Origin: Octopus sinensis
Lineage: Eukaryota
Direction of reading: 5' to 3'
Length of the DNA stretch: 64,000 nt
Assembly (NCBI RefSeq): GCF_006345805.1
Contig: NC_042997.1
Location: 54,560,001-54,624,000 of the forward strand
A program made the translations under genes and the position numbers. Every line of letters starts with the position of its first letter. Within the stretch, counting starts at the first letter, position 1. Positions 1 to 62,494 of this stretch are shown here, in pieces. The notes under the pieces were generated by a model. The model did not search any database. It was not told the DNA's origin and was given only the letters and a program-made list of their open reading frames with translations.

Positions 1-944
1 TTAATATGTATCATTAACCTTCATTTTCTGAAGAAAAAAATGTCTAGATGGGCTATTTTTATTCAAAAGCTATTAGTGTTCAACCAAAAACGGAAGAATC
101 TGAAATAAAAAATATAGGACGATACACCGAATAATGAAAAAAACAATGGTGTTGCCATAGTGTGCCAACCAGCTGGGAAAAGTTTTATCAAAATCAGTTC
201 ACAGAAAACCGAGAAATCCTAAATTTCACTCCTAAGCTTTTAGCATGGTTCTGGGTATAGTGTGAAAGTTGGGAAGAAAGTTTTCTGTGATATACGATAA
301 TTAACTCATTATGTACAGTGAGAAACATTCTGCATATTTTATAGTTTGTATATAGTTTATTTTAAAAGTTTAACATTTTTATCAAATTACCTGTACTATT
401 TTCATCCAATTACCTGTTAGATTAGTCATATGAAGAAGAATGTTGCTTGTAAGAGTATCCTAATTTTAATTGTAACTAAATCTTAAGTATAGAATGATAA
501 AGATTCATGTCAATAAATCTAGGTTGGCTTTCTTAGGTTGTTTGGACAGCACTGAAGTTTTTATCTTTGTCATGTTTCAGGAGAGGATGTAATAAAATTC
601 ATCTCTCAATTCCCTCTCCAGATCAACGATGCAATTTCAATTGCAAACTACAAGCTATCAAATTACTTATTTATTACACATGCTCTTGTTGGTTATAGCT
701 GACAGTTGTGTCTTCACATGCTGTACATTTACTAATAACTGAACTGATTTATTGGGGGTTAAGTATCTTTCTCAAGAACATGATACAGTACCAATGTTGA
801 GAGTTGTACCATCAATCTTTTCTCAATTCCTCCAGTGGCAAGTTTCTATTTGGTATTAATAATTTGAAAACAAAAAAATAGAAATCTTATCCAAGATTAA
901 ACAGAAAGTTATAGGATGTTTATTCAACATGTTTACTTAAATCT

Positions 945-1130
945 AAGGTGGCAAGCTGGCAGAGTTGCTAGCATATTGGGCAAAATGCTTAACATTTTGT
1001 CTCTTTATGTTTGGAGATTAAATTCCACTAATATCACTTTTCCCTTTCATCCTTTTGGAGTTGATAAAAGTAGTACCAATTAAACACTGGGGTTGATTTA
1101 ATCAACACTCACCCTCCCCCAAACTTAAAT
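945..1130 (+). mobile_element. tRNA-derived SINE, family B (central domain ...ttccctttcatccttttggagttgataaaagtagtacc...)
   Basis: Matches copies at 11510-11875, 36850-37025, 41823-42040, 43445-43850 and 59190-59375. The central domain resembles MetaSINE/Sauria-type SINEs from memory. Confidence 0.65.
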
Positions 1131-1524
1131 CATAAATGCTGAATAAAAGTGAACTTTCGAAAATCTTCCTACTCAGTATAATAGGTGAATGAGTTATTTT
1201 TTGTTTTGATTGATTTTGACAAAGGATATAATGAAATCAACATAGTTATTATTAGTTGTACAAACATACTTTAGAAGGTGAAACTATATATATCTTGTCT
1301 CTAACAGGTTAGAAAACTAATGCTAAATGTCACCTATCAAGTTCCTCAATATGCTGTCTATAATGAAAGTGATAGGATGATATTTAATGATATTTACAAG
1401 TGAAAGTAAAATGAATCAATATATCAATAATATAATATGTGTGTGTTTGTGTGTATGTATATATATATGATCGTTTTAATGTCCACTCTTTCATACTTGT
1501 ATATGTGTGGTGTGTTTGTGTGTG

Positions 1525-1567
<43 letters not shown>

Positions 1568-1635
1568 AAAGAAATGGCAAGACAACAAAAGAAGGAAAGA
1601 GACCTCAATATTATGTTAATAGAGGAATTTATCTG

Positions 1636-1782
1636 TAAATATAATATGTGACAATTATTTGGTAGCGATGATAAAACGCCGAGTTTCAGATGTTGGGGCA
1701 GAAGAGATGCTGGCGTGGGTTTCCGTCCCGACATCCAAAACTCAGAGTTTTATCATGGCTACCAAATAATTGTCACATATTA

Positions 1783-1788
<6 letters not shown>
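1636..1788. repeat. Fold-back (palindromic) element, MITE-like
   Basis: Arms 1636-1677 and 1747-1788 are reverse complements with 1 mismatch in 42, and imperfect pairing continues inward. A (TA)n tract follows on the right. Confidence 0.8.
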
Positions 1789-1829
<41 letters not shown>

Positions 1830-2328
1830 AGAGAGAGAGCAATCTGTGGGAATTATAGCTATTTTACTGTTCCTGCTAGAGCATTGTGAATTCACACATT
1901 TCAATGTAGTGTGTTATTGCAACTTATATGACTGGAAGGCTCAGCAACTGATGAAAACAGTATAAAACTACTGATATTCTGTATTCAGCTATTAAGCACT
2001 GCTCCCTGTAGAACAATCAGCAACATCTCAAACACTAAGTTTCCTAAGAGTTATTCAACTTTGACCTCATGGCAAGAATGTAAGTGTCTCTAGCTTGTGA
2101 GGTCAGGTTAGAGCTTTATTTATTAATGCCAACTCAGAGAAGTTTCCTCACTCGTCATCATCAAGGTGTTTCTGGATAGGTGTTGTTGTATGTTTATATT
2201 TGTAATTGTATTGTATTTGCCATTTTTATTACTTTAATTTATGATTGTATGTTGTAATGGTAAATGATTTAAATTAAAAGGTCTTAATCATTAGTTCTGA
2301 TGTTATATATATATATATATATATATAT

Positions 2329-2721
2329 AGGAGTGGCTTTGTCGTAAGTAGCTTGCTAACCAACCACATGGTTCCGAGTTCAATCCCACTGCGTGGCATC
2401 TTGGACAAGTGTCTTCTGCTATAGCCCTTGGCCGACCAATGCCTTGTGAGTGGATTTGGCAGACGGAAACTGAAAGAAGCCTGTCGTATATATGTATATA
2501 TATATATGTATGTGTGTGCATGTGTTTGTGTCTGTTTGTCTCCCTAGCATTGCTTGGTAACCGATGCTGGTGTGTTTACGTCCCCGTCACTTAGCGGTTC
2601 GGCAAAAGAGACCGATAGAATAAGTACTGGGCTTACAAAGAATAAGTCCCGGGGTCGATTTGCTTGACTAAAGGTGGTGCTCCAGCATGGCTGCAGTCAA
2701 ATGACTGAAACAAGTAAAAGA

Positions 2722-2722
<1 letters not shown>
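2329..2722 (+). mobile_element. tRNA-derived SINE, family A (about 390 bp, full length)
   Basis: A-box-like and B-box-like (GGTTCAATCC) motifs, an internal (TA/TG)n tract and the end gactgaaacaagtaaaag. Near-identical to 45622-46005. Confidence 0.85.
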
Positions 2723-2756
<34 letters not shown>

Positions 2757-3721
2757 CATTTCCTTACAACTTGAAATGTGTACTACTTTAGATGTATATT
2801 CTTATTTAGGCTCAAATTATCTGGCTGTTGTCAGACAAGTCACTTGACTTTTCATGATCTGATGCATCTAAGAACAGATGATCAGTTATATATGTCATCA
2901 GTGGGATCCAGTTTTCCTTCTTGATTCTCACCTGAAAGATGAAGAGTTGAATTTGCAATTATAAATGAATGGAACTCTTCTCACTTTTACAGTGTACTGC
3001 TGCTACTTGCATTACAAGCTATTGAATCTCTCTGTTTCTCTCTACGCCTAGGTGGACTGAACTGTTGTATTTTTTTAAAAGCTCTATTGCTAGAGCTGCC
3101 TGTGGAAATCATATTTGTATTTAATGGGACTGAATTTAAATAAAGATGTGACAGTTAATGGACAACATATTAAGAATTGCAGTCTATTTTTAAAAATAGA
3201 GCTTAATTTTCTTTTGCACACCTTTCTATACTACAGTTTACCAGAAAGAGTTAGAAGTTATTGCTGCTTATTCCACTTTTCAAAGAAAATTGGAAGCTGT
3301 GATGTATGATATGCTTCTGGATAACTCAGATGGTTTGAGCGATTGAAAGCTGAGTACTTAGTATTATTGGTGACGAAGTTCATACTCTGAATTCTTTAGC
3401 CAGTAGACTGGTAGTTGTCAGTTTGGAAAGCTGGGACTCTTGAAGACTAACAAGAATATAAAATAAAATTAGTGACAGAAAATAGATTTTTTGTATTAAT
3501 GACAGCATATATCAAGGAAAATTAGTTGTTAGAAAACATTGATATATGTATGTAAGTGTGCATGCATTGTGTGTATTTTATGTTGATTTGTTGGACGGAG
3601 TGAACTAATGTACAGCAGAAACATTTGATCACTATAAACAAAGCATCTGTGTGGTTGTTCAGTAAGAAATCGCAGAACCCTCATCTGTTGTGTATGGTAG
3701 GAAAGTTCACCATACATACAT

Positions 3722-4205
3722 ACATGTATGTTAACAAAAAGCTAAAGATCAGCAAAAAAGAAAATACCTATGCTGAACTGTTAAGGAATCTACAACTACT
3801 CTATCCAAATTACAAGTTCAAGTTTATACCTGTAATTATTGGGGCATTAAAATATGTAACACTACCAAAAAAAAAAAACAATCTTAAGAAATTAGGCTTT
3901 TCAAAACCAGAAAGGAGAAAGCTGATTTGAAGACTACAGATCCAAGCCATCACTGGAACTGTAAAAATCTGTAAAAATTTCGAGAAGTTTATCATTTAAG
4001 TATATATGAGCTTGTCTAGACATGCGATTATATGCATGAGAATAGATACATAAAACAAAATATACAAATCTGCATGTATACATACATACATACAAAGATA
4101 CCCTGTTGATGTTGGGGAAATTCTAATGAAGGAGCCTTGGATCTAGGTTAGAAACTAACTCTTTCTCTATTGACGAGAAATCTTGAAATAAAACTGAATA
4201 ATGAT
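3722..4205 (+). mobile_element. 3' end of a non-LTR retrotransposon with restriction-like endonuclease (R4/Dong/HERO-type), 5'-truncated
   Basis: Translation KKENTYAELLRNLQLLYPNYKFKFIPVIIGAL...LKKLGF...LI*RLQIQAITGTVKICK fits the C-terminal RLE region (K..KY..L...P++IGALG). A 3' UTR follows. Confidence 0.65.
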
Positions 4206-5307
4206 ATACACACATGTAAGTATGTATTTCTAGATGTATCTGTGTGTGTGTGTGTCACAGTAGTTACATTATTTATATCCTGCATAAACTAAATATCCAG
4301 TACCTCAGTGGTCCAATGTGAAAAGAGGTGGAATGAAATATCTTATTTAAAAAGCAAGGCTTGGTGTCATGATGGACATGCAGCCATAGAATATGGCCAC
4401 AAGAAATCTCATTCAAGCAACAACAGTAAAAGTAAGCATAAAAAAGAAGAAGACAATGATTGTGATGGTGGTTGTGTTGGTGTGTGTGTTTGTGTTTAAA
4501 TATAAATGAGTAGTATTTTGAAATCAAACCGGTAAACCTATTGAAATAAAAATTTGACATTTGATTAAAAAGAAAATTTATTGGAATAATGGGAGAAAAA
4601 AAAATTAAAGCACTGTGAAGCAGTAAAAGATTTCTTGTCAACCAATAAATATAAAACACACACACACACACATTGTAGCACAAAATTACCTTTTAACATG
4701 AGGTGGTAAACAATAGATAATTTTTTCCTTGCTTCAGCATGACCACACCTGCATGGCTGAAACGAGTAAAGAAATAAAAGAATAATGTGTATAAGTCTAT
4801 AAGAAATAAGAGTTTAATTTCTCATAAATATAAGACTAGTAATGTAGTTGGGGATTTGGGTTATTCTGATTGAAAGTCTGGTTATGAAATATTTCTAGGT
4901 GATAATAGCAAATAAACGTCAAAGAAAGTCTAAAACAAGCTAATAAATGATAAATTTTGAATATGTGCCAAAATTACCTCCCTTGAATATAATTATCTCC
5001 CTTACAAATTTTTTCTAAGCTAGGTTACACTTAAACCATAAAACATTAAAAAAAAATCACTAAAATTTATATTAAAATAGAATTACTACAAAAGTAACAT
5101 AAACCAATCTGGGCATGTTATTAGATCATATTTTACAAGTTTCCTTCAATGCAGCATAATTCATAATCAAATGTCAGTTGCCTGAATGAAAAGAATAAAA
5201 TATGATGTAATACAATACGTCATACTTGGATTGATTCATGTTTCCATTGTAACAATTCGATTTCGATGCATTGAAGAATGTGTATGTATGTGTCACTCTT
5301 TCTCCCG

Positions 5308-5352
<45 letters not shown>

Positions 5353-5353
5353 A

Positions 5354-5388
<35 letters not shown>

Positions 5389-5447
5389 CATACACACACA
5401 CATGTAAAACTACTTCCTTATCACTTAAAGATGTGAAGTATATAACA

Positions 5448-6465
5448 TTATCATCATCATCATCGTTTAACATACTGGCATGGGTTGGACAGTTCAGTAA
5501 TATTCAATGAACTAGGAGACTATGTTAAGATCCATTGTCTGCTTTGGTATGGCTTCTCCAGTTGCTTTTCCTAAGGCCCACCATTTTACACACGGTACAG
5601 GGTGCTTTTTTCATGACATCAGCACTAGTGTGATCACCTAGTAACTTACAAAACAAGATCACTTAACAGAATGAGGGTGCTGTATTAAGAGAGGTGGTAT
5701 TGTGCCGGGTGTTGAAAGGCTAAAGCCTAATGGAGGGATAGGAACAGGTGTCTTGTTGTTGAAGGGATATATGGCTACCTCAGCAGGAAAGGGAGAAAAG
5801 ATGGAGGTGAGGTCCCAGGACGTACTCTCAGGACACAAGAAGGTGGATAAAGGGAGGATAGGGACAAAGAATTAAGGATGGATGGGTAGGTAGGTAGATG
5901 TGTCAGAATCTGAAAGGAGATTGACAGTCAGATGAAGATAGAGGTGAACACAGTGAATGACAAACATGGATAGAGGCATGGATAATGGTGAATCTCAGTT
6001 TGGGGGAAGGTGTAGGAAACTAGAAATAGCTTGGGGAGGAGGATGTGATATGTGGCAATATATGAAATGGTGTGGTGGTGGACAGCAACAGTATGATGAA
6101 AATGTAGACAGATGAGAAATGGGAAGGTGATGTGAAGTGTAGTGAAAAGAGAAAGTGCATACTAACAGATATGGAGGTCAGCAGCATATTGGGGGGGTGG
6201 ATATAGCGAGTAAAAAAAGTGGGGGGACTGATGCTGATGGCAGATATGAGAGGGTGTTCAGGAGAAAAGAGGCATTCAGTGGAATAAAGTAGAAAGGGAT
6301 GATACTGAGAATCGGGGATGCGTCACAAGGTAAGTGATTCCAAAGAAAGGGGTAACAAGTAGTACAAAAAGCAAGAGTGAAATATGTGCAGTTCTACTCT
6401 CATATAATTACAGCTTATGAGGAAATAGCACCATAGTTAGCAGGGTGAAAAGAAGATGGGTGTTA
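5448..6465 (-). mobile_element. Degenerate non-autonomous element with an RTE 3' tail and a long pyrimidine-rich 5' region
   Basis: (CAT)n tail at 5448 followed by the RTE 3' UTR motif. The purine-rich body on + is similar in character to 16865-17270 and 46645-46955. Confidence 0.5.
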
Positions 6466-6489
6466 TGCAGCTTAGTATACTCTCACCCC

Positions 6490-6536
<47 letters not shown>

Positions 6537-6584
6537 CGTATGTACGTACGTATTCATATATATTATGTATATATAAATATATAG

Positions 6585-6681
6585 TCATGGCTGTGTGGTT
6601 AAGAAGCTTGCTTTGCAACCCTGTGGTTTGGGGTTCAGTCCCACTGCATGGCATCTTAGTTTTTGAGAGAATTTGTAGACA

Positions 6682-6712
<31 letters not shown>

Positions 6713-6935
6713 ATTTATGCGTCTTTGTGTTTGTCTTCACAACTGTTTGGCAACTAGTGATGGTTTGTTTACATCCCTGCAACTTAGCAGTTCATAAAAA
6801 AAAAGACCTATAAATTAAGTACGAAAACATAAAATAACTACTAGGGTTGATTTGTTCTACTCCTCAAGGTGAAGCCCCAACATAGTTGCAGTCTAATGAC
6901 TGAAACAAGTAAAAGACAACAGTTAAAAGACAGAA
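6585..6935 (+). mobile_element. tRNA-derived SINE, family A (diverged)
   Basis: tggctgtgtggttaagaag...ggttcagtcccactgcatggca...gactgaaacaagtaaaag. Confidence 0.75.
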
Positions 6936-7240
6936 ATAGTGTAAGATAAGGAAGATTCAAGTAAAGAGATAGTGAAAGACTGATAGTTGTAACTGAGCAG
7001 TAATATCTTCTCTTTACTTCATACTAATTCTTCCCCCTTTTCATAAATATAAAACATACACCATAGATATACATTCTCATTCATTTCTCTTAGACAACAC
7101 TGTAAAGACAGTAGTATATATTGGAATACTGTACTTATTATAATTCTACATTTTAAAAAATTGTATCTTTGAAAGGTTAGTTTGTATGGTAGATTATAAT
7201 CTGTGATCTATTTTCTAACTCATCAACAAATGCTAATATA

Positions 7241-7757
7241 TCTATATATATAAAACTGTAGTTGTGTGAGTGTCTGTCTCCTACGATTTAGATTCCTAAC
7301 TCCTCCCACATTTTGCGGTGCAGTTTAACCAAATTCGGGTATCTTATAGTCGTGATTAATATCAAGCCCGTCTGGCTATTAGCGCGCGTCTACGATGAGT
7401 CTACGATTTTAAAAATAATTTAACATCATTTTTTATTCCATTTTAATGCATAATTTTTCGTGTGTCGATGGCGGCGGAATTGGCGTCCACGCTCAAACAC
7501 CTGCACCTGTGTTTGCTTCTCCCCCTTCTTCCCTCCCTCGTGAAGCTGTGGGGAAGGGAGTTTAAGGAAATCAATGTCGTAATGCGTTGTCAAGGAGACC
7601 AGCGTTCTTTTAGAACAACGACTTCATGGCTTGAAGACACCAAAACAGAAATGGCTAAGAAAGCCCGAATTGGCATCTATAAGGGAAGTAACTCTCTAAA
7701 AATGCTTATATAGTTATTTCCCTTACAAACCCAAGCAACGCCGGGCGATACTGCTAG
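7241..7757 (+). mobile_element. Non-autonomous Helitron, copy 1 of a head-to-tail pair
   Basis: Starts TC (tctatatatataaaa) after A7240 and ends with a GC-rich hairpin (cccaagcaacgccggg) plus CTAG at 7754-7757. Confidence 0.8.
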
Positions 7758-8152
7758 TCTTTATATATAAAAGTAAGGTTGTGTGTCTGTCTCCTACGAT
7801 TTAGATTCCTAACTACTCCCACATTTTGCGGTGCAGTTTAACCAAAACCGGGTATCTTATAGTCGTGATTCATATCAAGCCCTTCCGGGTATTAGCGCGC
7901 ATCTACGATGAGTCTACGATTTTAAAAGTAATTTACCATAATATTTTTCCATTTTAATGCATTTTTTCGCTATTATATAAGGGAAGTAACTCTCTAAAAA
8001 TGTCTACGATGAGTCAACGATTAAAAAAATATTTACCATAATTTTTTTTCCATTTTTAATGCATATTTTGCTATTTTTTGGCCATAACTCTCTAAAAATG
8101 CTTTATAGTTATTTTCCTTACAAACCCGAGCAACGCCGGGCGATACTGCTAG
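7758..8152 (+). mobile_element. Non-autonomous Helitron, copy 2 of a head-to-tail pair
   Basis: Starts TC (tctttatatataaaag) directly after the first CTAG, ends cccgagcaacgccggg...CTAG at 8149-8152 followed by T. It has an internal duplication. Confidence 0.8.
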
Positions 8153-8477
8153 TTTGATATATGGAAGTCAATGAAGCTATTCATTCAACTATCTCAATCT
8201 GGTGACTAAATCATACAAAGTTTAAAATCTGTAAAATCAAAACTTCATGTTTTATTATTTCCTAAATTTTAGAATGGCTGACCTCATAATTTAGATGGAT
8301 TGCTAGGAAGCTGACATAGTTTAATTGGAACTAACTTGCTAGATATCTTACATCTGCACACCTCTATAATAACTATGGTGCTGTACCTATTAGTTGCTTC
8401 TTAGGAATTTGTTGAGTTTATTCCTGTACCATCAGTCTACTTTATGTAAAGCCGATGAAAGCTATGAACAACATAAA

Positions 8478-9433
8478 ATAATAATAATAATAATAATGAA
8501 ATTATTGTATACAGTGCTCAGGTGCACCACAACTTGTCAGAAAGTGCATATAAAGTACATGCAGTAATGTAGAAATGTCTGGAAAGCGAACAATGTATGA
8601 GTCAGATACATGCTTGTGTGTGTATGGAGGGGAGAAAATCAAGTGTAGTGTTGGCGAATCTCAGGAAGCATGGAAGTTTTGAAGGATGCAGTGCTCCGAC
8701 AACTAACAACTGATGCCGGCAGTTTGTTCCATGCTTCAGCAACTCTCAGCGTGAAAAAATGTTTCCTGAAGTCATGGGAGCTGTGCTTTTTCTTACTTTG
8801 TAAATATGTCCACGGGTGTTAGATGGTGGAGTTTGAAAAGGTGCTCAGAGTTATTGTTTGTACGATGGTTGATAATTTATGGGTGTCTGCCAAGTCAGCT
8901 GCCAGACGTCGGAGTTTCAATGTGTCCATGCCCAAGGAAGTAAGGCATTCAGGATATGGCAAATGCCTGATGGAGGGTATTCTTTTGGTTGCACGTCGCT
9001 GAAAGCTTCCAGACGATTGATATCCTGGGCAAGATAGGGGTTCCAGACCGGTGATGCAAATTCCAGGTGAGGTCTTACCATAGCTATATAAAGCCGCAGA
9101 TAGATAGCCGGAGAGCGGCTCACAAAGGATTTGGTGAGTGATGCCAAGACACCCTCAGCCTTCTTGACAATTTTAGCGATGTGTTTTGTCCAACGCAAAT
9201 CACTGTCGACAATAACACCCAGGTCACGTTCACATGAAGACTTTTTGAGACTAGTGTTGTGGAGGGAGTAGGTGGACGCTGGGTTTCTCCTCCCAAAATG
9301 CATGGTGGTACATTTGTCCACAGCCAGCTTGAGTTGCCAGTCCATGATCCACTGCTGCATTGTGTCCAGGTCTGCTTGCAATAGAGATCTATAGTGTACA
9401 GGATTTGACCTCTTTATTTCGAGGTACAGCTTA
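8478..9433 (-). mobile_element. 5'-truncated CR1-type LINE (RT C-terminus, 3' UTR, (TTA)n tail)
   Basis: ORF 8917-9381 reads QADLDTMQQWIMDWQLKLAVDKC...ERDLGVIVDSDL...VRPHLEFASPVWNPY. The 3' end is GTGCACCTGAGCAC...(ATT)n at 8478-8530. It lies antisense in a GLYCTK intron. Confidence 0.9.
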
Positions 9434-9555
9434 AGCTACTCAATATTGTGCAGAAAGGCAATTTTTGTCTCATCTAAATTAAAAGTTCTAATTTAGTAAA
9501 CAATTTTTGAAGAGAAAGTAATTTGTAAACAATTTTTCATCTTTTTCTGTTTTAG

Positions 9556-9704
9556 TTCTCTATTACCAACTTCATCTCAGATTTTATTATATGAAGGTGC
9601 AGCAGACAATGTTCTAGATGAAAATGCCCATGCTACTGCTTTGAAGATTCAAGAACTTGTATGTGCCTTACAGAGTTCTGATATTCTGATTGTCCTTATA
9701 TCTG
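9556..9704 (+). CDS. GLYCTK: Glycerate kinase internal coding exon (xSLLPTSSQILLYEGAADNVLDENAHATALKIQELVCALQSSDILIVLISG)
   Basis: Acceptor ctgttttag ends at 9555 and donor gtaagt starts at 9705. The frame is open and matches the GLYCTK segment FEGAEDNLPD...DLLLVLISG. Its phase joins the next exon to make the LISGGGSAL motif. Confidence 0.93.
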
Positions 9705-9894
9705 GTAAGTTAACAGCTTTGTGGTAACTGGACACTAGGAAATAGTAAAGAATGCTTCTAATTATATTGGAGAAAGAAACAATTAAAACATATCTATGCA
9801 ACCAAAATAATAGAAACCTTCCTGTTCAGTCTAAAATGAATTTAATAATTTCATTTTGAATATATCTTCATAAAAAATAATTTTATAGCCTGTT

Positions 9895-10216
9895 TTGAAG
9901 GCATCGATGTGGCTGTCATCCTGTTTCAGTCAAATAAAAAAAGTGATTGTTATTTACCAACGTCGCTTCACTGGCACCTGTGTTGGTGGCACGTGTAAAA
10001 AGATTCGAGTGAGGTCATTGCCAGTACTGCCTGACTGGCCCCTCTGCAGGTGGCACGTAAAAAGCACCCACTACACTCTCGGAGTAGTTGGCGTTAGGAA
10101 GGGCATCTAGCTGTAGAAACTCTGCCAGATCAAGACTGGAGCCTGGTGCAGCCATCTGGTTGCCAGCCCTCAGTCAAAACTGTCCAACCCATGCTAGCAT
10201 GGAAAACGGACGTTAA

Positions 10217-10245
<29 letters not shown>
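9895..10245 (+). mobile_element. RTE LINE 3'-UTR/tail fragment
   Basis: Matches the 3' end of the RTE at 59970-60500 and ends acggacgttaaa(tga)n. Confidence 0.85.
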
Positions 10246-10247
<2 letters not shown>

Positions 10248-10549
10248 ACTATGATATAAATATTTGTTGATTAGGAAGAGATTACTTCACCATTATAGTT
10301 TTGTATTTATTGCTGAATGGTAAGTTGAAACAAGTCTTGTTGCTCTGCCTGGTTTGAGTTACTTGTTATTTTTACCATGTTGATTATATATTGTGCTTTG
10401 AGATCATTGATAGTAAAGGCTGAGTTTTCGTTTTCTGAGACTCTGTAGAAAGTTGCTTTGGTAGAGGGGAAGACATCAATACAAAAGCATGGTATCAATG
10501 TAACAAAAATACTAAATGCAGATGAATTTTTAATTATTATCTCTTTCAG

Positions 10550-10725
10550 GTGGTGGTTCTGCCCTTCTACCAACACCGTGTCTTCCAATAACGCTTGAAG
10601 AAGAAATCATTCTGACCAAACTCATGTCATCTCATGGAGCAACAATAACACAACTTAATACAATCAGACAGAATATTGAACATTTGAAAGGAGGTGGCCT
10701 TGCTCATCTTGCTTATCCAGCTCAG
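10550..10725 (+). CDS. GLYCTK: Glycerate kinase internal coding exon (GGGSALLPTPCLPITLEEEIILTKLMSSHGATITQLNTIRQNIEHLKGGGLAHLAYPAQ)
   Basis: Acceptor ctctttcag ends at 10549 and donor gt starts at 10726. The 176 nt fit the phases of both neighbours. Contains the family motifs GGGSALL, GATIxxLNTIR and KGGGLA. Confidence 0.95.
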
Positions 10726-10842
10726 GTTTTTAGCTTGCTTTTCATTCTTTCTTTGTTAGGAAAAGAAACAATTTCATTCACCTTTGTATGAACCTAAATC
10801 CTAGAGCTTGTGTAAAAATATTAATATTTTTGTTGTTTTTAT

Positions 10843-11250
10843 CATCATCATCATCATCGTTTAACATCCGTTTTCCCTGCTAGCATGGGTTGGACGGTTC
10901 AACCGGGGTCTGGGAAGCCAGGAGGCTGCACCAGGCTCCAGTCTGATCTGGCAGTGTTTCTACAGCTGGATTCCCTTCCTAACGCCAACCACTCCATGAG
11001 TGTAGTGAGTGCTTTTTACATGCCACTGGCACAGGGGCTAGAAGAGGCCGGCAATGGCCAGATCAGTTGGTGCTTTTTATGTGCCACCGGCACGGAAGCC
11101 AGTCAAGGTGGAGCTGGCATTGGTCACGTTCAAACAGTGCTTTTTACGTACCACCAGCATGGGTATCACAACTACAATTTCCATTTGATTTTTATTTTGA
11201 TGTTGCTGTACTTGACTCAATAGGTCTCCTCAAGCACAGTAGGTCACCCA
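10843..11250 (-). mobile_element. RTE LINE 3'-UTR/tail fragment
   Basis: (cat)n cgtttaacatccgttttcc...; reverse complement of the 9895-10245 copy. Confidence 0.85.
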
Positions 11251-11509
11251 AGTTTAAATATGCAAATCATTAGAATTATTGTACAGGAAGGGATGTAAGT
11301 TTGTACTATTCATACCCTTTCTGGATATATTTAGCACTGTAGGTGAATTTATAAAATAATATTTACTAAGAAATATGTAAGGCAACGAGTGAGTCTTTGC
11401 ATGGTCACTTGATTTGCTAGATATATCAGCTGAATCTCCTGAGTAGTGGTGATTCATCTGCTGTATCTAGCAGGATGAAATATTAGTTTCAAAATTTTGG
11501 CCAATGGTC

Positions 11510-11875
11510 AGTAAGTTTGGGGGAGGAGGTAAGTCTAGTACATTGACCCCAGTTTTATCGACTGTGAAACGATGAAAAACAGAGTTGACCTCAGCAGAAT
11601 TTGAACTCAGAAAGTAAGGTTGGACAAAATACCTATTTCTTTACTTCCCACAAGGGGCTAAACACAGAGAGGACAAACAAGGACAGACAAACAAATTAAG
11701 TCGATTATATTGACCCCCCAGTGCGTAACTGGTACTTATTTAATAGACCCTGAAAGGATGAAAGGCAAAGTTGACCTCGGTGGAATTTGAACTCAGAACG
11801 TAGCAGCAGACGAAATACTGCTAAGCATTTCGCCCGGCGTGCTAACATTTCTGCCAGCTTGCCACCTTAGCAGGA
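11510..11875 (-). mobile_element. Two adjacent SINE family B copies
   Basis: ggatgaaaggcaaagttgacctcggtggaatttgaactc...gccagcttgccacctt is the reverse complement of the family B head and centre. Confidence 0.65.
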
Positions 11876-13829
11876 TGAAATATCGACACATTGAATAATG
11901 AAATCATTCATATATTTTTGCCCTTCCAAATGATATGGCCATAGCTAGTATACTTTGATAACTTTTCTTGATCATTTTTGACCTGGGGCTAAGCAGTAAC
12001 AACTGAGGACTTAGTACAGTGCCATACTCTTGCCATACATATCTGAAAATAAGGATGTATAAAAATATGTGTAGTGATAAATTATTGACAAAGTATTTTG
12101 ATTAATTTCATTGATGTATGCAATACTATATTTCTCCTCCAAATTTCTAAGGAGCATCTTAAAGCTGTTTGGGGGTTCCTCTTGTTGTTTAGTCCCAGGG
12201 CAGCCCTGATTCAGTCAAAACTTTCCTGTTTTGACTATTCTCTTTTTTTTTTCTCAGATGTGGTTTGTATCTAGGACTACACTATTCAACACCTATTTCT
12301 ATGATAAAAGGGTGTGATTTGAGGAGATTGCACTAATATTTCTGTCAGTGTCAGAGATCTCAAAGACACTCCCTCAGTGGCTCATGTTGATTCTGGTTTT
12401 TAGACTTCAAACTGGAAATTAGTGATCAAATACCTCATTTACTCAGCTACTTTCTTTCTGTAATAGAATAAGAAATTATATCTCCTGTTTGATTAGAGAT
12501 AAATGTCTCCTGGATAAGTGAGAAGTCTTTGGCATGTAACTCTACCTGATGGGCAAGGAGGGAATTCTAGAGGGTTGAGTAAGGAGTGGGCTTATTGGTT
12601 TATTAAGGACCTAGATGAGTGAACACAGTCTAGGTGATAAAAGGAAGAGAGCTGAGTGAGTTGACAGTGATTGAGAGGAGATGGCATGAGATGAGCTAAC
12701 TCTACTGAGTAGAAGCCACTGTATTAGCAGTAGAAGGGGAAGAGGTAAGAAAGCAGCTTATTTGAGGAGCTCCAGTCAGATTGTCTTTCTTGTGTAAGAC
12801 TTCAGTGTGTGTTTAAGAAGTCAATATTTATAGGAAATGAAAATGCTCCCAAGGGACCACCAAGAATCCCTTTCTGTGAAGGTGAGAGTATTGTGAACAT
12901 CAATGATGGCAGAGGTGGTTTGGATGTTTTGTAGTGTCTTTTCCGAGGAAAGCAGAAATTGATAAGAGTTGTAGTCTAATAGAAGTGGTATTTCTGGTGT
13001 TGTAGACAGTAAATCATGAATGTGGTAGTTGCAGCATTACTGATAGAGGGGTTAGTAGTAGTGGTGGTAGCAGATAAATAGATGTGATAGTGATGGTAGG
13101 TCAGTGGTGATGTGGCTATGGAGGGATTGGTTTGGTAGCCGTGATGGTATGGTTCTTTAATGATGATAATTATAATTATGTTAGAGATAAAAAAGGAGGA
13201 GGAAGGTCAGAGTGCTGACAGGAGTGGTAAAAATATCAAGTGGTGGTGATTATAGTGAATTTTTTTTTATTTCAGTGTCTTTGCTGTGGTAAAAATAAAT
13301 TCCACTAACATTTGAGTGGTGCTTAAAATCTACTTCTTAGTTTGGGCTTTATGTCTTCAAGTGGATGTGAGATAAATCTCCTTTAGACAAGTTACCAGTA
13401 TATTACAAGTAACATTTACAGTTGATCAGACACCTTTCCTAACTGATTGGTAAATCAAGGTACTTAGAATAAAGTGTGTTGCAAAGAAAATAATTAAAAT
13501 ACCTACAATTCATTAACTATAAGTTGTTAGTCCTATACCTTATCTATTTTGCCATTTCATCTGCTCTCTTCAATAATAGATGATAATATATATGAATGAT
13601 TGATTTGTGCAGAGCAAGTCATTAGGTTAAGATTCTTTGTAAGTAACCTAACTTACAAGTAGTTGATTTTTCCTGAAATCATTTTCTTCTACCTAAAGTA
13701 ATAGAACACACATTCCATGTACTAATATATTTTCTCTTGGACTGGTTGAAGAGTTGCTGATTTGTATTTCATCATTGGTATTGTACAGCTTATTTGGCAA
13801 TGATATTAGTCTGCCTCACTGAAAATAGA

Positions 13830-14415
13830 TACAGGGTGTAGTAAAAAAGCATCCGACCTTCGGCCAAAAAACAAGTAATATTAAAAACTCACCATTTTGA
13901 TTTAGTCTCCTTCAAAGTATTTGCCTTGAGAGTCTACACACTTCTGCCAGCATTACTGCCACCACTAGAAACATTTCTGGAAATCACTTCTTGGGATGCT
14001 GTAGAGCTGTGCCATCAAATTTTGCTTAATGTCCTCTATTGACTCAAATCTTCTCCTTTTGAGAGTTTTTTTGAGCTTTGAGAATATCCAAAAGTCATGC
14101 AGAGCCAGGTCTGGGGAGTAGGAAGCCTGACGAACAAGTGGTGTGTTTTGCTTGACGAGGAATGCTTGGATGACGTGGGCGGGATGAGTGGATGCATTGT
14201 CATGGTGGAGTTGCCAGTTCTTTGCTGCCCACAGATCGGCTTGTTTTCGCTGCATTGCTTCATGAAGGTGACGAACCTCCAGGTAGTATTCTTTGTTAAT
14301 TGCCTGCCCTTGTGGTTCATATTCATGATGCACAATATCTTTGTAGTCAAAGAAACTGGTCATTATCAGTTTAACATTGCTGTGCACCTGTCTTGCTTTT
14401 TTTGGTCTTGGACGC
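13830..14415 (-). mobile_element. Mariner transposon 3' fragment (degenerate DD34D transposase)
   Basis: ORF 13965-14498 includes FFDYKDIVHHEY, WQLHHDNASTH and YSPDLALHDFWIFSKLK. Terminus TA|CAGGGTGT at 13830. Confidence 0.85.
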
Positions 14416-14439
14416 ACCCACCTAATACCCATGTGGATT

Positions 14440-15275
14440 TTGCTCATATTTGGAGATATGCTGTGCTTGAGAAGACCCGACAAGCCAAGTGAGATCATAG
14501 CCCATGGCCTATGCTAGTGGGTGTAACCAGCCCATTTATGAATACCTCTCATTCATTGGACAATAAACCTTGCTTATGAAGACCTATTGAGGCAAGTGAA
14601 ATCAAAATCAAAATTGCTGACGTGGCCAATGATAGAACCGCCTGATTGGCACATGTGCCAATGGAATGTTAAAAGCACATTCAAATGTGGGGTGTAACTG
14701 GCCCACTTATAAGTATCCCTCATTCATTGGACAATGAACTTTGCCTGGGAAGACCTATTGAGGCAAGTGTAAACAAACCAAAATCACTGATGTAGCTGAT
14801 GACAGTACCGCCTGATTGGCACTTGTGCCAATGGAACATTAAAAGCATATCCAAGTGTGATCATTGCCAGGGCCACAGATGTCTCCCGTACTGGTGACAC
14901 GTGAAAAGCACCATTCAAGTGTGATCACTGCCTGTGTTGCCTTACAAGCATATGTACCAGTGGCATGTGAAAAACAACATTCAAGCGTGGTCATTGCCAG
15001 TGCCGCCGGACTGGCTCCCATGCAGGTAGCACGTAAAAACACCTTTTGGGTATGGTCGTTGCCAGTACTGCCTGACTGATCCTTGTGCCAGTGGCATGTA
15101 AAAAGTACCCACTACACTCTCTGAGTGGTTAGCATTAGGAAGGGCATCCAGCTGTAGAAACTTTGCTAGATGGAATTGAGCTTGGTGCAGCCTTTGGCTC
15201 ACCAGTCCTCAGTCAAGCCGTCCAACCCATGCCAGCATGGAAAGCAGATGTTAAACGATGATGATAATGATGATA
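14440..15275 (+). mobile_element. RTE LINE 3' UTR (long fragment with an internal ~180 bp tandem duplication)
   Basis: Matches 62505-63122. The block attcattggacaat...gaagacctattgaggcaagtg...attggcacatgtgccaat is duplicated, and the copy ends in a (tga)n tail. Confidence 0.8.
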
Positions 15276-15720
15276 ATTATCATTTTGTGCCCCAAAAATC
15301 AACTTTGGATACATTTTGACTACACCTTGTATTTGTTAAAAGTAGTGGAAACATTACATAATTGACAAATATTTTGTTCATACATAAAGTTCAGCTCAAA
15401 TTCTATTTTGGGTATAGATTACTGTGGGCGGCCGAATCTTAAAAAAGATGATTTGCACTATATATGCTACATGAAATTGAAATCTTCAGGTCAACTGCAG
15501 TGATTTGACAAGTTATACCATGAAAGATATACAAGCAACTGCTGGATGGTAATACTTTAATCCATGATAAAACTAATTTTAACCTGAATGTTGATTGATT
15601 TTTATCCCGAAAGTTACAGACTGTTTAGACCAATATTGATATCTAAATAATCATAAATCATAAATTTCTTGAATTCAAAACTTTCAATATTAATGTTAAC
15701 ATTTTTTGTTGTTGTTGTAG

Positions 15721-16592
15721 GTCATTTCTTTGATTTTATCAGATGTGATTGGTGATCCTCTTGACAAAATTGCCAGTGGTCCAACTGTATCGCAAACCTC
15801 AGAGCCACAGGATTGTTTAAAAATATTTGATCATTTGAACATTTCTCACAAGGTCCCAAAATCAGTCTTTGAAGTGTTACATGAAAAGCAATTGGAATAT
15901 GAAAAGAACAGAAGTAAATTCAAAAGAATGAATGCCTCGAAAGTTTTTAATTTCATTATTGGAAGTAACAGTATTGCTGTGGAAAGTGCTCAGATGAAAG
16001 CTGAAGAACTGGGATATCAAAGTATTGTTTTATCTACATATCTCGAAGGTGAAGCTAGAGATGTTGGTTGTCATTTTGTAAACCTTGCCATCTCTGTTTG
16101 TAACCAATATATCAACAAGTTCATGGCTAAAAAGTTAAATGAATGCGACTTTCCAGAATTTTCCAACAGTAAACTAGATGAGCTGAAAATGTTAATTAAA
16201 TCTGCTGCTTCAAACTCAAATCCAATCTGTATTTTGTGTGGGGGTGAAACCACAGTTACTATGAAAGGAAACGGTAAAGGTGGCCGGAATCAAGAAATGG
16301 CTCTTTCAGTTGCTGTTATGTTGCAACAAATATTTACTAATGATTTAAAAAGGAATTTATAGTTGAATTCCTCAGTGCTGGGACAGATGGACAAGATGGT
16401 CCTACAGATGTTGCTGGAGCAATGGTATCATCTGAGATGGTTGTAGAAAGTTCTGCTAAAGACTATTTGAATAACAATGATTCTTATAATTTCTTTAAAT
16501 CATATTTAAATGGTCAGCATTTTGTTTGGACCGGTCTAACAGCAACTAATGTGATGGATATCCAGTTATTAATAATTAAACGTAAAAAGTAG
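15721..16592 (+). CDS. GLYCTK: Glycerate kinase terminal coding exon (MOFRL-type C-terminal region), with a -1 frame discontinuity near 16344-16362
   Basis: Acceptor gttgtag ends at 15720. The first frame reads [22 protein letters not shown]...[22 protein letters not shown] to TAG at 16360-16362. The -1 frame continues [19 protein letters not shown]...NNDSYNFF...[20 protein letters not shown] to TAG at 16590-16592, matching the GLYCTK C-terminus. Confidence 0.93.
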
Positions 16593-16864
16593 AAATCAGG
16601 ATATATTTGAAAGTGTCAGCATTTGCTTGGCCAATTAAATGGAAATTAACATTATTAGAATACATCAGATTATGATTCACCTTTTAAGGGAACAAATAAT
16701 TCACCTTTTAAGGGATCTTTGTTTCTAGTCAAAAGATTTTGATAATTAAGCAAATATAAAAATCAATGACAAAATTTGAAGACATTTGATAAAAATTATA
16801 TTAAAAAATGTTTCATTCAAATAATTTTTATAATGTGTTTTTTTTTCTGTTAAGTACTCCTGAT

Positions 16865-17430
16865 AACATCTTCATTCATCTCTTAATCTACAATGACCCT
16901 CTCCTCACAGCTTCTCTGGATCACCCTTATCTCTTTTTCTCATGCCCCTTTCCTCCCTCACCTTCTACCCATAACATGCACTGGAATCCCTCTCTCCACC
17001 CTATCCCACCTCACCACTTTTCCACTGTGTCCCTCTCTCTTTTCTGCTGACCCCAAATACTGCTTCTTTCTTTCCTCTTTCCTTTCCATATTCCACTCGC
17101 AACACTACTCTGTTACTCTCATACTACCACTCTCTCATAACAATAAAACTGTTCCTCTTATATTTCACCCTTTCATCTCCTCTCCTAAAATCATCACCCA
17201 CTCTCTCATACTCTGTTTCTTTTGTGTTGCTAGTTACAAGGTGGCCTCTCTAATACTGATGACTTGACACAAAAAAAAAGCACTCACTACATTCTGAAGA
17301 GTCATTGCTATTAGAAATTGTACCCAGCTATACAAAACTGATACATCGGACTCATTAGCTTCTGTCAAAATGTCCAACCCATGCCAGCATAGAAGGCTGG
17401 TGTTGAATGATGATGTTGATGATGATATGC
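16865..17430 (+). mobile_element. Degenerate RTE-tailed non-autonomous element just downstream of the GLYCTK stop
   Basis: A pyrimidine-rich body is followed by gtccaacccatgccagcat...tgatgat. Confidence 0.5.
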
Positions 17431-17574
17431 CTAAATATTTCAATAGAGTTATGAGTAATGTATGTAGAGTGATGGCTCAAACTGTTGAACTTTAATAGAT
17501 TTGAATCCAATTTCTTTTTAATGGGTTAATCTGTTTGTCCTCAGGTCATTGTTTTAAAGAACCTACATTCAGAG

Positions 17575-17965
17575 AGACTAGTGTGACTGTGTGGTTAAGA
17601 AGCTTGTTTCCCAACCATTTGATTTTGGGTTCAGTTCCACTGTGTGACACCTTGGTCAAATGTCTTCTACTACAGCCTTGAGACAGCCAAAGCTTTGTGA
17701 GTGGATTTGGTTGACAGAAACTGAAAGAATCCCATTGTGTGTGTGTGTGTTTATTTCTGTGTAACCTTGACATGCTTGTCTAGAGATCATGTGATTGTTG
17801 TAAACAAGCATCACTGTCATACAAGCGAAAACATGTTTGGCCATGGAGAAATATTTCCCTTATTTGGAAACAGGTGAGAGCTGGCAACAGGACAAACATC
17901 AGACTGTTGAAAACCTGCTTCAACAAATTCCATCTGACTTGTGTAAGCGTGGAAAAGTGGATGAA
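17575..17965 (+). mobile_element. SINE with a family A head and an alternative, RTE-like tail
   Basis: The head gtgtggttaagaag...ggttcagttccactg...gtggatttggttgacagaaactgaaagaa is followed by a different 3' half ending gtggaaaagtggatg. Confidence 0.6.
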
Positions 17966-18852
17966 TGAATATCATGTGACTTCTTTCTTTGACCAATCAC
18001 CAGCGAGTATTGTATCTTCTCTTATTTATTTCTTGTACTCTCAGCATTTCCTACATCTCAGGTTATGGGGATCCTCTGAGTCAGATTCTTCTTCATTTAT
18101 TCCTTGATCCACCACATTACTATATCTCATACAACTCAATAACTATGAAGTTAAGGTGCTAAGTTATTCACAACACAGTTCATGCTGCAGGCGTTTTTTA
18201 TGTTACCTGTAGTGAAGTTTGCAATTATGAACTCTTCTTGTCTCAGATTGCCTTTTAAAATTTTGATGTTATTCAGACATTATGGTTGAATCTCTTTAGA
18301 GAAAATGTGTAAAAATCTCATAAACATTATAGATTGGAAGATTGGAATTTGCAAAATCATCCCTCTCATGGTTTCATGGAAAAACTGATGGAAAAAATAT
18401 TTTAAAAGTTTCTCATCAATTTTCTGGTTTTCTGAACTATGTTTGTTGTTGAATCAACTTATCTTCACAATATTCTTTTGACAATTATACTTGGAGTACT
18501 GAATTAAGTGGAAATTGCTGAGATGTTTGCTGGTGAACAGTACTGAAAGTGAATCCTTTCATCTGAGAATAATTGAAGAGTGATTATTCCACATAAAAAT
18601 GTGATATGAACTTGTAATGGACGTAGCAGTGTTTTGGGTTGATTGTAGAAGCCCAGCAGGGACAAAAATAGGATCAAACATTGCAAAATGATGCATGACA
18701 ACTGAAATACTGAGAAATATGCTACAGGCTACACTCCTGATCCATCTAACATATGTCAGCATGAAAAGATAAATATAATCTGATAATGATCATAGTAATT
18801 TATATTTATTGCTTTGTACCTGAAAAGAATTATAAAGGATTATTAAATAGAT

Positions 18853-22520: not shown

Positions 22521-22909
22521 GGCAAACAGCCACGATCAGATATATATATATATATATATCATCATCATCATCATTATCAACATTTTAATGTCCCCTTTTC
22601 CATACTTGCATGTATTAGTTGGAGTTTATTGAGGCAACCTTGTTTCCAAGCAGGGTAATATTTCTCCGTGGTCAGAAATGTTTTCATACAATACTGGAAG
22701 GCACTGACAATCATTTTAGATCAATGCAAGGAGATGCAAATACACACACATGCACACATGCATGCACGCTCGCACACACACACGCACACACTGAGCTTCC
22801 TTCAATTTCCATCTTCCAAATCCACTTGCCTAAGGTGCCATACAATGGGACTGAACTATGAACAATGTGCCTGGGAAGCAAACTCTTACCACACAACCAT
22901 GCCTGCACC

Positions 22910-23580
22910 TACATACACACCCAAGCACTCCACACTCGCACACACACACATACATACACACACACATACATACACACATACATACATACACACATACATA
23001 CACACACATACATACATACACACATACACACACACATACATACACATATACATACATACACACATACATACACACACATACATACACACATACATACACA
23101 CATACATACATACACATACATACACACATATACATACACACATACATACACACACATACATACACACATATATACACACACATACATACATACACACACA
23201 CATACATACATGCACATACATACACACACATACATACACACACACATACACACATACACACATACATACACACACATACATACACACACATACATACACA
23301 CATACATACACACACACATACACACATACATACATACACACATACATACATACACACACATGCATACATACACACATACATACATACATACACACACACA
23401 TACACACACACACACACAAAATAAATGCATATACATACACATGTATGTATGTAAGCATGTGTATATATATATATATATTGGAAACATCATTGGGCTTTCT
23501 CCTTCTTTCTCTCCAACTTGTACACACACACACACACACACACACAGATAGACAGACAGATACACACACACACACTCATG

Positions 23581-23612
<32 letters not shown>

Positions 23613-23640
23613 TGCACACTCACGCACACACATGGACACA
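22910..23640. repeat. Long compound (CA)n/(CATA)n microsatellite
   Basis: Directly visible; it generates the spurious H/T/Y/I and C/V/M ORFs. Confidence 0.95.
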
Positions 23641-23784
23641 GTCATGCACAGAAATGAATCTACTGCTGCACATATTTCCGAGGTGTCAAATGACTCACAT
23701 TTATTAACACAAGGAACTTCACTAGACACCTTAATTACATCACATTTATGTCTCACCCTACAACTATCTGCACCAGCGCACTAA

Positions 23785-30364: not shown

Positions 30365-31628
30365 CATAAATAATGTGGGTTTTTTTCAATTGTATAAACT
30401 AAAAGTCAGAGTGGGGTGGGATAAGCTACCTGTATCAACCTGCTACAAAAGTAGCTAGTAATTTTACCTTGTACCTATTTTTAGAGCAAGTTTTGAAGAG
30501 TGCAGTTTGATTTTAACAAGTTGTTTTTTAAAAGCTACAATGGAAGTGACAAAGGAGCATATTTTGCATATTTTGCTTTATGAGTTCAATAAAGGCAACA
30601 GCGCAACAGAAAGTGCAAGGAATATTAATGCTGTACATAGGGATCAGACGACAAGCATAAGCCAATGTCAACAACTGTTCCAGAAATTCCAAGCTGGAAA
30701 CTACAGTCCAGAAGATGAGCCTCATCCTGGAAGATCTGTAGAGCTCGACAAGGGCATCCTGCAAGCCCTGGTGGAACAAAACTTCATCGTAACTGTTGAG
30801 GAACTAGCAGAGAAGTTTGGATTTGGTAATTCAACCATTTATTGATACCTGCATACCATCAGAAAAGTCAGAAAGTTGGGTTAATGGGTTCCTCACAAAC
30901 TTTCTGAGTCTAATCATGTGCAGAGAGTGAATGTATGCTCTTCTTTGCTGTGATGTCTAATGAATGAACCCTTTGTGGATTGAATTGTGACTGGTGACAA
31001 GAAATGGGTTCTCTATAAAAATGTCAAGCACTGAAGACAGTGGGTAGGGAAAGGAGAAACACCAGGGACCCAGGTTAAAGGTCTTCACCGATGTAAGGTG
31101 TTGTTATCTGTTTGGTGGGATATGAAAGGTTTAGTCCACTTTGAACTTTTAAACCTAAACCAAACGATAACAAAGGAGATCTGCTGTGAGCAGCTTGAGC
31201 ATCTTAAGTCAGCGCTAGAAGGAAAACGACCATCTTTGGTTTCAAGATGAAAGGTGTTCTTCCATCATTGGGTACATACAGCAAGGATGACATTCCAAAA
31301 GCCAGAGGAGTTTGAATGGGAAACAATGCCTTCCCTACCATATTTGCCAGACATCGCCCCATCTGATTATCATTTATTCTGCAGTCTTCAAAATCATTTT
31401 GACGGAAAGAACATGAATTCTGTAGATGAGGCCAGAACAGTATTGGAGGAGTATTTTCCTACACAGATGAGTGAATTTTGGAAGAGGGGCCCTGTAAGTC
31501 TACCAGATAGATGGAAGAGCATTGTAGAAAATGAAGGGGAGTATATTTTAGATTAAAAAAGAACTTTATCTAAATTTTGAAAAATAAAAGAAGTATAAAA
31601 AAACGCATTATTTATGGGATGACCCAAT
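30365..31628 (+). mobile_element. Near full-length mariner element with a degenerate DD34D transposase (about 30540-31556)
   Basis: Contains an HTH region, WVPHKL, IVTGDKKWV and PDIAPSDYHLF. The right TIR is cgcattatttatgggatgacccaata|TA and the left TIR is partial (cataaataatg). Multiple stops and frameshifts. Confidence 0.92.
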
Positions 31629-31804: not shown

Positions 31805-33135
<1,331 letters not shown>

Positions 33136-33435
33136 TCCTACTAATCATGCCTTCAAAAATTTACCACATACACATGCTTACACACACATACATAAAAACA
33201 CTTATAAGCACACACATATAGATTCAAAATAAAAATCTCAGATAACCACTCCTCTCTAAACATCCTCTTTCCAAAATCCAAGAAAACAAATTCAACTCCA
33301 GATTTTATTTCAACTGACTCACATATATATAAAAGATATAAATTTTTTGCTAAAAAAACATTCATGATAAATCCTGAAAGGGCCGAAAGAATTAAATAAA
33401 TAGTTTTTATCCAAATCCTGACTACCTTCTTTTTC

Positions 33436-51359: not shown

Positions 51360-52085
51360 TATTGGGTGATTCGATAAATAATATGGTTTTTTTAATACTT
51401 CTATTGTTTTTCAAAATTAAGATAAACAAAGTTTTTTTAAAATCTAAAATATACTCTCCTTCATTTTCTACAATGCTCTTCCATTTATCTGGTGGACTTG
51501 CAAGGCCCCTCTTCCAAAATTCACTTGTTTGTGATGAAAAATACTCCTCCAGTCCTGTTCTGATCTCGTCTACAGAATTCATATTTTTCCCATCCAAATG
51601 ATTTTGAAACTGCAGAATAAATGATAACCAAATGGCACAATGTCTGGTGAATGTGGTGGGTGGGGCATTGCTTCCTATTCAAACTGCTCAAGCCTTTGGA
51701 ATGTCAATTATTGCTGCATGTGGTTGAGCATTATCCTGATGGAAGAACACTTTTCGTCTTGAAACCAAAGATGGTCATTTTCTAATGGACTACAGGTGTC
51801 AATGAATGGTTGAATGACTAAATCCACACTTCTCTGCTAGTTCCTCAACAGTTACAAAGAGATTTTGTTTCACCAGGGTTTGCAGGATATCCTCATCCAG
51901 TTCTACAGATCTTTCAGGATGAGGCTTGTCTTCCAGGCTGTAGTTTCTGGACCAGAAGTTCTGGAACCACTGCTGACACTGGCTTACTCTTATTGTCTGA
52001 TCCCCATACACTGCATTAATATTCCTCTCACTTTCCATTGCCTTTATTGAACTCATAAAGCAAAAATGCCAAATATGCGAATGGC
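51360..52085 (-). mobile_element. Internally deleted mariner (same family as 30365-31628)
   Basis: Right TIR at about 51361 (tattgggtgattcgataaataat). The HTH part (ORF 51799-52116) is joined directly to the C-terminal part (ORF 51322-51597). Confidence 0.85.
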
Positions 52086-52109
52086 AGTCAAATGTGGGCT
52101 GTACTGTAA

Positions 52110-62290: not shown

Positions 62291-62457
62291 ATACATACAC
62301 AAGAAGTGTGTGTTGTTATTTCATGGGTCGGCTGTATTTTAGGTTTAAGAGAATATTTTTTCACTGTACCTAGTGTTAAAAACAACCGAAAGTAAGTCAG
62401 AAGCCAGTGAAACAACTCACATAAGTTCCCTTTTTGGACCAACAGACAATGATGTTT

Positions 62458-62494
<37 letters not shown>

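Follow-up and report, generated by a model that had tools for sequence, protein, structure and literature searches.

The GLYCTK locus and its surroundings

The window, a 64,000-nt stretch of Octopus sinensis contig NC_042997.1 (positions 54,560,001 to 54,624,000, forward strand), carries the last three exons of GLYCTK. By comparison with the O. bimaculoides protein, the O. sinensis gene was rebuilt as four exons, the first of which is situated upstream of the window (Table 1). The exon lengths in O. bimaculoides are 398, 149, 176 and 873 nt, and O. sinensis differs only in exon 4, which measures 872 nt. The four-exon organisation is common to three octopods, with slightly different lengths in Argonauta hians. 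All acceptors and donors of the O. sinensis gene are canonical, and both the start codon and the stop codon are intact.

As a member of the animal GLYCTK family the gene is ordinary, with DUF4147 followed by MOFRL. The DUF4147 exon matches score 46-78 bits, and both Pfam domains are above the gathering score and occur in order. GLYCTK was found in every animal group among the protein search matches. Searches of the O. sinensis assembly with the DNA and with both Pfam domains matched only the window locus; they revealed neither a second copy nor a haplotig, and by both routes the gene is single copy.

Table 1. Features of the O. sinensis GLYCTK locus. Positions refer to the window, except those prefixed C1, which refer to NC_042997.1.
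Feature	Position	Strand	Remarks
GLYCTK exon 1	C1:54,546,187-54,546,584		upstream of the window
GLYCTK exon 2	9556-9704	+	149 nt; SSLLPTSSQ...DILIVLIS; acceptor ttttag, donor GTAAGT
Leu codon CTA	9614-9616	+	exon 2; CCA (Pro) in O. bimaculoides
GLYCTK exon 3	10550-10725	+	176 nt; GGGSALLPTP...LAYPAQ; splice sites intact
GLYCTK exon 4 (last)	15721-16592	+	872 nt
Exon 4, first part, zero frame	15721-16359	+	end of DUF4147 and MOFRL positions 1-34; ends ...TNDLKRNL
Exon 4, remainder, -1 frame	16344-16592	+	MOFRL 39-106; contains NNDSY...TATNVMD; stop TAG 16590-92
TAA TGA, -1 frame	16338-16343	+	upstream limit for any frame change
T TTA AAA, slippery-type heptamer	16344-16350	+	in phase
A5 run, lesion site	16347-16351	+	orthologues with six positions: AAAAAA, AAAAAAA or AAAAGA
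Hairpin AGGAAUUUA-UAGU-UGAAUUCCU	16351-16372	+	9 bp, -8.1 kcal/mol
Premature zero-frame TAG	16360-16362	+	within hairpin loop
Indel-skew region	C1:54,544,822-54,578,000 (window 1-18000 and upstream)		compared with the O. bimaculoides assembly

Several mobile elements were observed in the window. Fragments of mariner/Mos1-type transposases (Pfam Transposase_1, DDE_3 and HTH_48) are present at 13965-14513 on the minus strand, within GLYCTK intron 3, at 30462-30845 on the plus strand and at 51799-52149 on the minus strand. A non-LTR retrotransposon remnant at 60717-62460 (minus strand) comprises RVT_1 pieces and a PHD finger spread over three abutting frames, which indicates that the remnant is itself frame-broken. 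Low-complexity stretches at 22659-23657 and 32194-33232 (TG/CA-rich, TTC/CTT-rich) produce, on both strands, spurious open frames that reach 332 codons. The interval 17000-64000 consists mostly of repeats, and no further host protein-coding exon downstream of GLYCTK is evident among its open frames of at least 110 codons.

The frame break in exon 4 and its orthologous context

At the break, the zero frame reads GAT TTA AAA AGG AAT TTA TAG and terminates at the premature stop. The -1 frame is open over 16344-16589, past the TAA TGA that closes it upstream, and runs into the normal stop codon; any frame change is confined to 16344-59. These features had all been described in the original prediction, which was made from the letters of the window, and each of them, from the zero-frame sequence and its TAG to the closure by TAA TGA and the open -1 frame to 16592, was read directly. 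The match to the Pfam MOFRL profile is split, with profile positions 1-34 in the zero frame and 34/39-106 in the -1 frame. The two pieces score 44 and 64 bits, and one added A converts them to a single match of 112 bits. The frame break is real and interrupts a conserved domain; the single uninterrupted frame across spliced exons that marks a GLYCTK gene is absent from the gene as assembled. With one A inserted, the junction peptide is identical to that of O. bimaculoides, and the mended protein has 531 residues, 14 of which differ from O. bimaculoides (~97% identical). Apart from the break in exon 4, the whole O. sinensis CDS shows no further stop or frameshift.

Comparison of the site among octopods reveals how the frame was changed. 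O. sinensis reads GAT TTA AAA AGG AAT TT, O. bimaculoides reads GAT TTA AAA AAG GAA TTT, Argonauta reads GAT TTA AAA AAA GAA TTT, and a third octopod, represented by Logan contigs of run SRR11869384, reads GAT TTA AAA GAG GAA TTT. The frame is continuous in O. bimaculoides, Argonauta, the third octopod and two squids. With Argonauta and the third octopod as the outgroups that polarise the deletion, the alignment shows that, in the sequence as assembled, one A has been lost on the O. sinensis side from an ancestral six-position (A6) run, so that exon 4 has 872 rather than 873 nt. The run is indeed A5, as had been claimed, and the cause preferred at that time, one missing A through either an assembly error or a null allele, gains support from the A6 of O. 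bimaculoides and from the outgroups that polarise the loss. Eight homopolymers of at least 5 bases are present in the O. bimaculoides CDS, only two of which reach 6, the lesion run among them.

The protein encoded after the break is identical to that of O. bimaculoides at 81 of 82 positions. Downstream of the break, the O. sinensis branch carries 0 amino-acid changes in 82 codons and 2-3 synonymous changes; the lack of amino-acid change indicates that there is no decay, in agreement with the earlier view that the gene is not an old pseudogene. Nonsynonymous and synonymous counts are 6-8 and 5-11 on the O. sinensis branch, and 3-4 and 3-4 on the O. bimaculoides branch. By these branch-wise counts, with Argonauta and the third octopod as outgroups and with low power for a gene loss younger than ~1-2 million years, dN/dS is not raised on the O. 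sinensis branch. The divergence from O. bimaculoides is 2.3% in the CDS as against 5.9% in the introns. A unitary pseudogene would be recognised by several lesions and a dN/dS near 1; one frameshift only is observed here.

A substitution was also noted in exon 2, where a Leu codon occupies a column at which all 168 homologues, a set spanning cnidarians to mammals, have Pro. The column aligns with HPIPDE of an archaeal glycerate kinase (PDB 1x3l) and corresponds to the latter Pro in the HP-x-PD motif. Across all 169 sequences 57 columns are invariant, and the Pro/Leu column is one further, with O. sinensis as the sole exception. The change is derived on the O. sinensis branch. A real damaging variant, a tolerated substitution and a miscalled base are all conceivable, and the change hints at relaxed constraint. 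Nevertheless, it weighs little, since 11 of the 168 homologues, all presumably working, carry a comparable singleton at an otherwise invariant column.

The slippery-type heptamer and the hairpin

The heptamer is directly abutted by a hairpin, whose stem pairs 16351-59 with 16364-72 and whose 4-nt loop, UAGU, consists of the stop codon and one base. The hairpin is AU-rich and starts at 16351, which leaves a spacer of 0 after the heptamer. The correct phase of T TTA AAA and the zero spacer had been recognised in the original prediction. Its 7-bp stem, AGGAATT/AATTCCT, requires amendment: the arms are present and the TAG lies in the loop, and the fold extends the stem to 9 bp.

Neither the heptamer nor the hairpin exceeds chance as a signal. 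Against its shuffles, the 77-nt region has z = -1.3 and shows no excess of structure, and ~2.2% of all positions in the window have a perfect 7-bp hairpin within the next 0-9 nt. In-phase X XXY YYZ heptamers number 4-6 per CDS in each of three octopod orthologues, including a second TTTAAAA, and none was found in the squid GLYCTK CDS.

O. bimaculoides (CDS 1347) and Argonauta (CDS 1332), both of which have continuous frames, carry this heptamer in the identical phase. The hairpin is encoded by GAA TTT ... GAA TTC (Glu-Phe ... Glu-Phe); its arms recur without change in O. bimaculoides and in the third octopod, and Argonauta lacks the hairpin. It follows from this distribution that both elements are older than the break and arise incidentally from the coding sequence; inherited from an uninterrupted gene, they lend no support to frameshifting. 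The heading of the original prediction, which sets the two side by side, oversells them; the idea of recoding that it conveys is not supported, as both elements are unchanged in O. bimaculoides, whose frame is continuous. With any one-base deletion in this run, a -1 slip automatically yields the ancestral DLKKEF....

Explanations for the missing base and known parallels

The O. sinensis assembly GCA_006345805.1 (Li et al. 2020) is chromosome-scale, with 13,516 scaffolds and 2719.2 Mb as listed in the O. vulgaris genome paper (PMC10700109). The assembly as analysed contains 2,719,151,902 bp. We take GCA_006345805.1 to have been built from PacBio reads and Hi-C. One-base homopolymer undercalls are the typical residual error of long-read consensus. 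A literature search for frameshift or indel errors in the O. sinensis assembly found nothing relevant among the papers covered. Protein searches with the full-length sequence, with the last exon and with 124 residues around the junction, along with exact look-ups of the open frames of the window, retrieved no O. sinensis or O. vulgaris protein or contig; as the collections may omit records of this or very close genomes, the absence carries no weight.

Over 22.7 kb of the locus, comparison with the O. bimaculoides assembly, which is short-read-based, reveals that O. sinensis is shorter at 87 one-base indels and longer at 34 (p = 1.6e-6). In runs of at least 6 bases, O. sinensis is shorter at 6 and longer at 0. 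Most of the one-base skew is situated outside homopolymers (51 shorter vs 19 longer at run length 1), and multi-base indels are likewise skewed (75 shorter vs 50 longer). In the 3' flank, O. sinensis carries deletions of 6, 15 and 19 nt at 16920, 17214 and 17346 that neither O. bimaculoides nor the third octopod shares; judged by this alignment, they are clearly real and lineage-specific. The skew outside homopolymers, the skew of the longer indels and these real deletions together indicate that the skew is partly biological. Consensus undercalls and a genuine bias towards deletion may both contribute to it, and it is supportive of an artefact, not decisive.

Actin genes were inspected elsewhere in the assembly. 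On unplaced contigs (C8911, C8460, C12602, C6094 and C9737) they are present as adjoining out-of-frame pieces with internal stops, which suggests either poorly corrected contigs with uncorrected indels or clusters of pseudogenes. The 16 long actin exons on chromosome-scale scaffolds (~15 kb coding) show no frame break, and coding error on these scaffolds is therefore not high, with an upper bound of ~0.2 per kb.

We infer that the shortening from A6 to A5 is most likely a base missing in the assembly only. The hallmarks of an assembly homopolymer error, namely a one-base change in a run, a long-read consensus and an otherwise intact conserved gene, are found together at this site. This explanation is ranked first on indirect evidence and on the general expectation that, gene for gene, indel errors of long-read assemblies are commoner than genuine frameshift alleles of conserved genes present in single copy. 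The base would then be missing from the consensus only, and the animal would make a normal 531-residue enzyme. Nothing unusual would take place at the ribosome. The heptamer and the hairpin arise from the codons for Asp-Leu-Lys-Lys and Glu-Phe-Ile-Val-Glu-Phe. A real deletion, either a null allele in the sequenced animal or a unitary pseudogene that arose very recently in the O. sinensis/O. vulgaris lineage, is a possibility to be kept in mind, and clearly the less likely one. The product would have 452 residues, ending ...TNDLKRNL and lacking the last two thirds of MOFRL, and would probably be inactive, or its mRNA degraded. Homopolymers are also the commonest sites of genuine one-base deletions, and the run is among the two longest in the CDS. 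Genuine deletions of the O. sinensis lineage are situated nearby, GLYCTK bears another suspicious alteration in the Pro to Leu change, the clean actin exons on chromosome-scale scaffolds mean that coding errors are not rife, and a single-copy gene has no back-up copy to hide the loss. However, the lesion is the single disabling one, with no other stop or shift and with intact splice sites, and the dN/dS that is not raised, together with the 82 post-break codons free of amino-acid change, would make the loss very recent. The Pro to Leu change is weak in view of the singletons in other homologues, and GLYCTK is present in every animal group among the search matches. From general knowledge, the prior for a real frameshift on the sampled haplotype, in a metabolic gene that is conserved and single copy, is also below the per-gene indel error rate of long reads.

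Recoding would require that A5 is real and that the full-length enzyme is produced by -1 ribosomal frameshifting on U UUA AAA or by RNA polymerase slippage that adds an A to the run, and we consider it very improbable. The attraction of this proposal is evident: the heptamer is correctly phased and included in the obligatory shift interval, a -1 slip there would give the ancestral protein letter for letter, a hairpin comes after it, and the downstream frame is perfectly preserved. Yet O. bimaculoides has both heptamer and hairpin unaltered, Argonauta has the heptamer, and in either species a shift would destroy the protein; their occurrence in relatives with a continuous frame indicates that neither evolved for frameshifting. 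Known stimulators of -1 frameshifting lie ~5-9 nt beyond the heptamer and have considerably greater stability, whereas the present hairpin has no spacer, reaches only -8.1 kcal/mol, is AU-rich and belongs to a region with z = -1.3. In-phase heptamers are, moreover, found several times per CDS in the octopod orthologues. Among the features of a programmed -1 site, the heptamer is present; an adequate spacer, an adequate structure and conservation of the break along with the signals are missing. Useful polymerase slippage involves runs of roughly 7-9 or more, and the run at this site, A5 followed by GG, is far shorter. In the absence of a stimulator, the expected yield would be only at the per-cent level. 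The original prediction had likewise placed recoding below the loss of an A and had named six As in orthologues as the observation that would speak against it; orthologues do show six As. Even more doubtful is a self-suppressing mutation, in which A5 would be true and homozygous and the deletion inside the ancestral U UUA AAA would be suppressed by accidental slippage, in which a fraction of ribosomes move back one base and produce exactly the ancestral protein. Least probable of all is a frame mended otherwise at the RNA level, whether by a small intron over the break, by use of another last exon or by A-to-I editing at the TAG. TTTATAG at 16356-62 resembles a splice acceptor, and cephalopods are generally known to edit mRNA heavily; against this, the same four-exon structure is observed in three octopods. 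A micro-intron or alternative acceptor was rejected because all 61 frame-restoring GT-AG intervals delete invariant motifs (e.g. GKGGRNQE) and are themselves exonic in orthologues. A-to-I editing of the TAG was also rejected, as it leaves the length unchanged, and with the TAG read as Trp the wrong frame merely runs on for another 26 codons before it meets a TAG.

If the assembly error is true, GLYCTK is truncated in the O. sinensis reference by an error of one base, and the gene model calls for a flag or for read-based correction, and not for annotation as a pseudogene or as a case of recoding. When a deletion hits an A run in an AT-rich CDS, a "correctly phased slippery heptamer" often remains, and the repeated Glu-Phe codon pair makes the hairpin. 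Together the two mimic a frameshift signal, and the mimicry is exposed by an unbroken orthologue with the same "signals". A true deletion would amount to a natural glycerate kinase knockout in an octopus, of modest interest for serine and fructose catabolism. Recoding, if true, would be the only reading to interest specialists, and the self-suppressing case would represent an accidental frameshift mutation, perhaps in transition to a fixed recoding site, in a housekeeping gene of an animal.

The gene shares with animal GLYCTK, which has the glycerate 2-kinase fold (PDB 1x3l, 2b8n), both domains in the same order. It differs from intact animal GLYCTK in that the frame, as assembled, is broken inside MOFRL, and in the Leu that replaces an invariant Pro in exon 2. 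Programmed -1 sites, such as U UUA AAC of coronaviruses, retroviral gag-pol and mammalian PEG10, are similar to the present site in that an in-phase heptamer is situated at the only possible place for the shift, a stem-loop follows, and a slip would give a sensible protein. This is in contrast to the lack of a spacer, the weak hairpin and the break that is not conserved in relatives of O. sinensis. Known -1 sites are conserved together with the frame overlap, unlike GLYCTK, where heptamer and stem occur in orthologues that need no shift. In the G-string mutants of herpes simplex thymidine kinase, which carry leaky frameshifts in a homopolymer run, a little activity is recovered when ribosomes slip. 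If A5 is real, the likeness to these mutants consists in a mutation in a shifty run, at which a small fraction of ribosomes could restore the frame by accident; any slippage in GLYCTK is hypothetical in comparison and would be adventitious, not programmed. Homopolymer errors of PacBio CLR and nanopore assemblies offer a further comparison. Unlike typical homopolymer errors, much of the local one-base skew is found outside homopolymers, and the actin exons on chromosome-scale scaffolds are clean. The likeness to such errors extends to the loss of one base from a run, to a conserved single-copy gene split into adjoining frames, to a long-read assembly, and to a locus with an excess of one-base "deletions" relative to the short-read assembly of a sister species.
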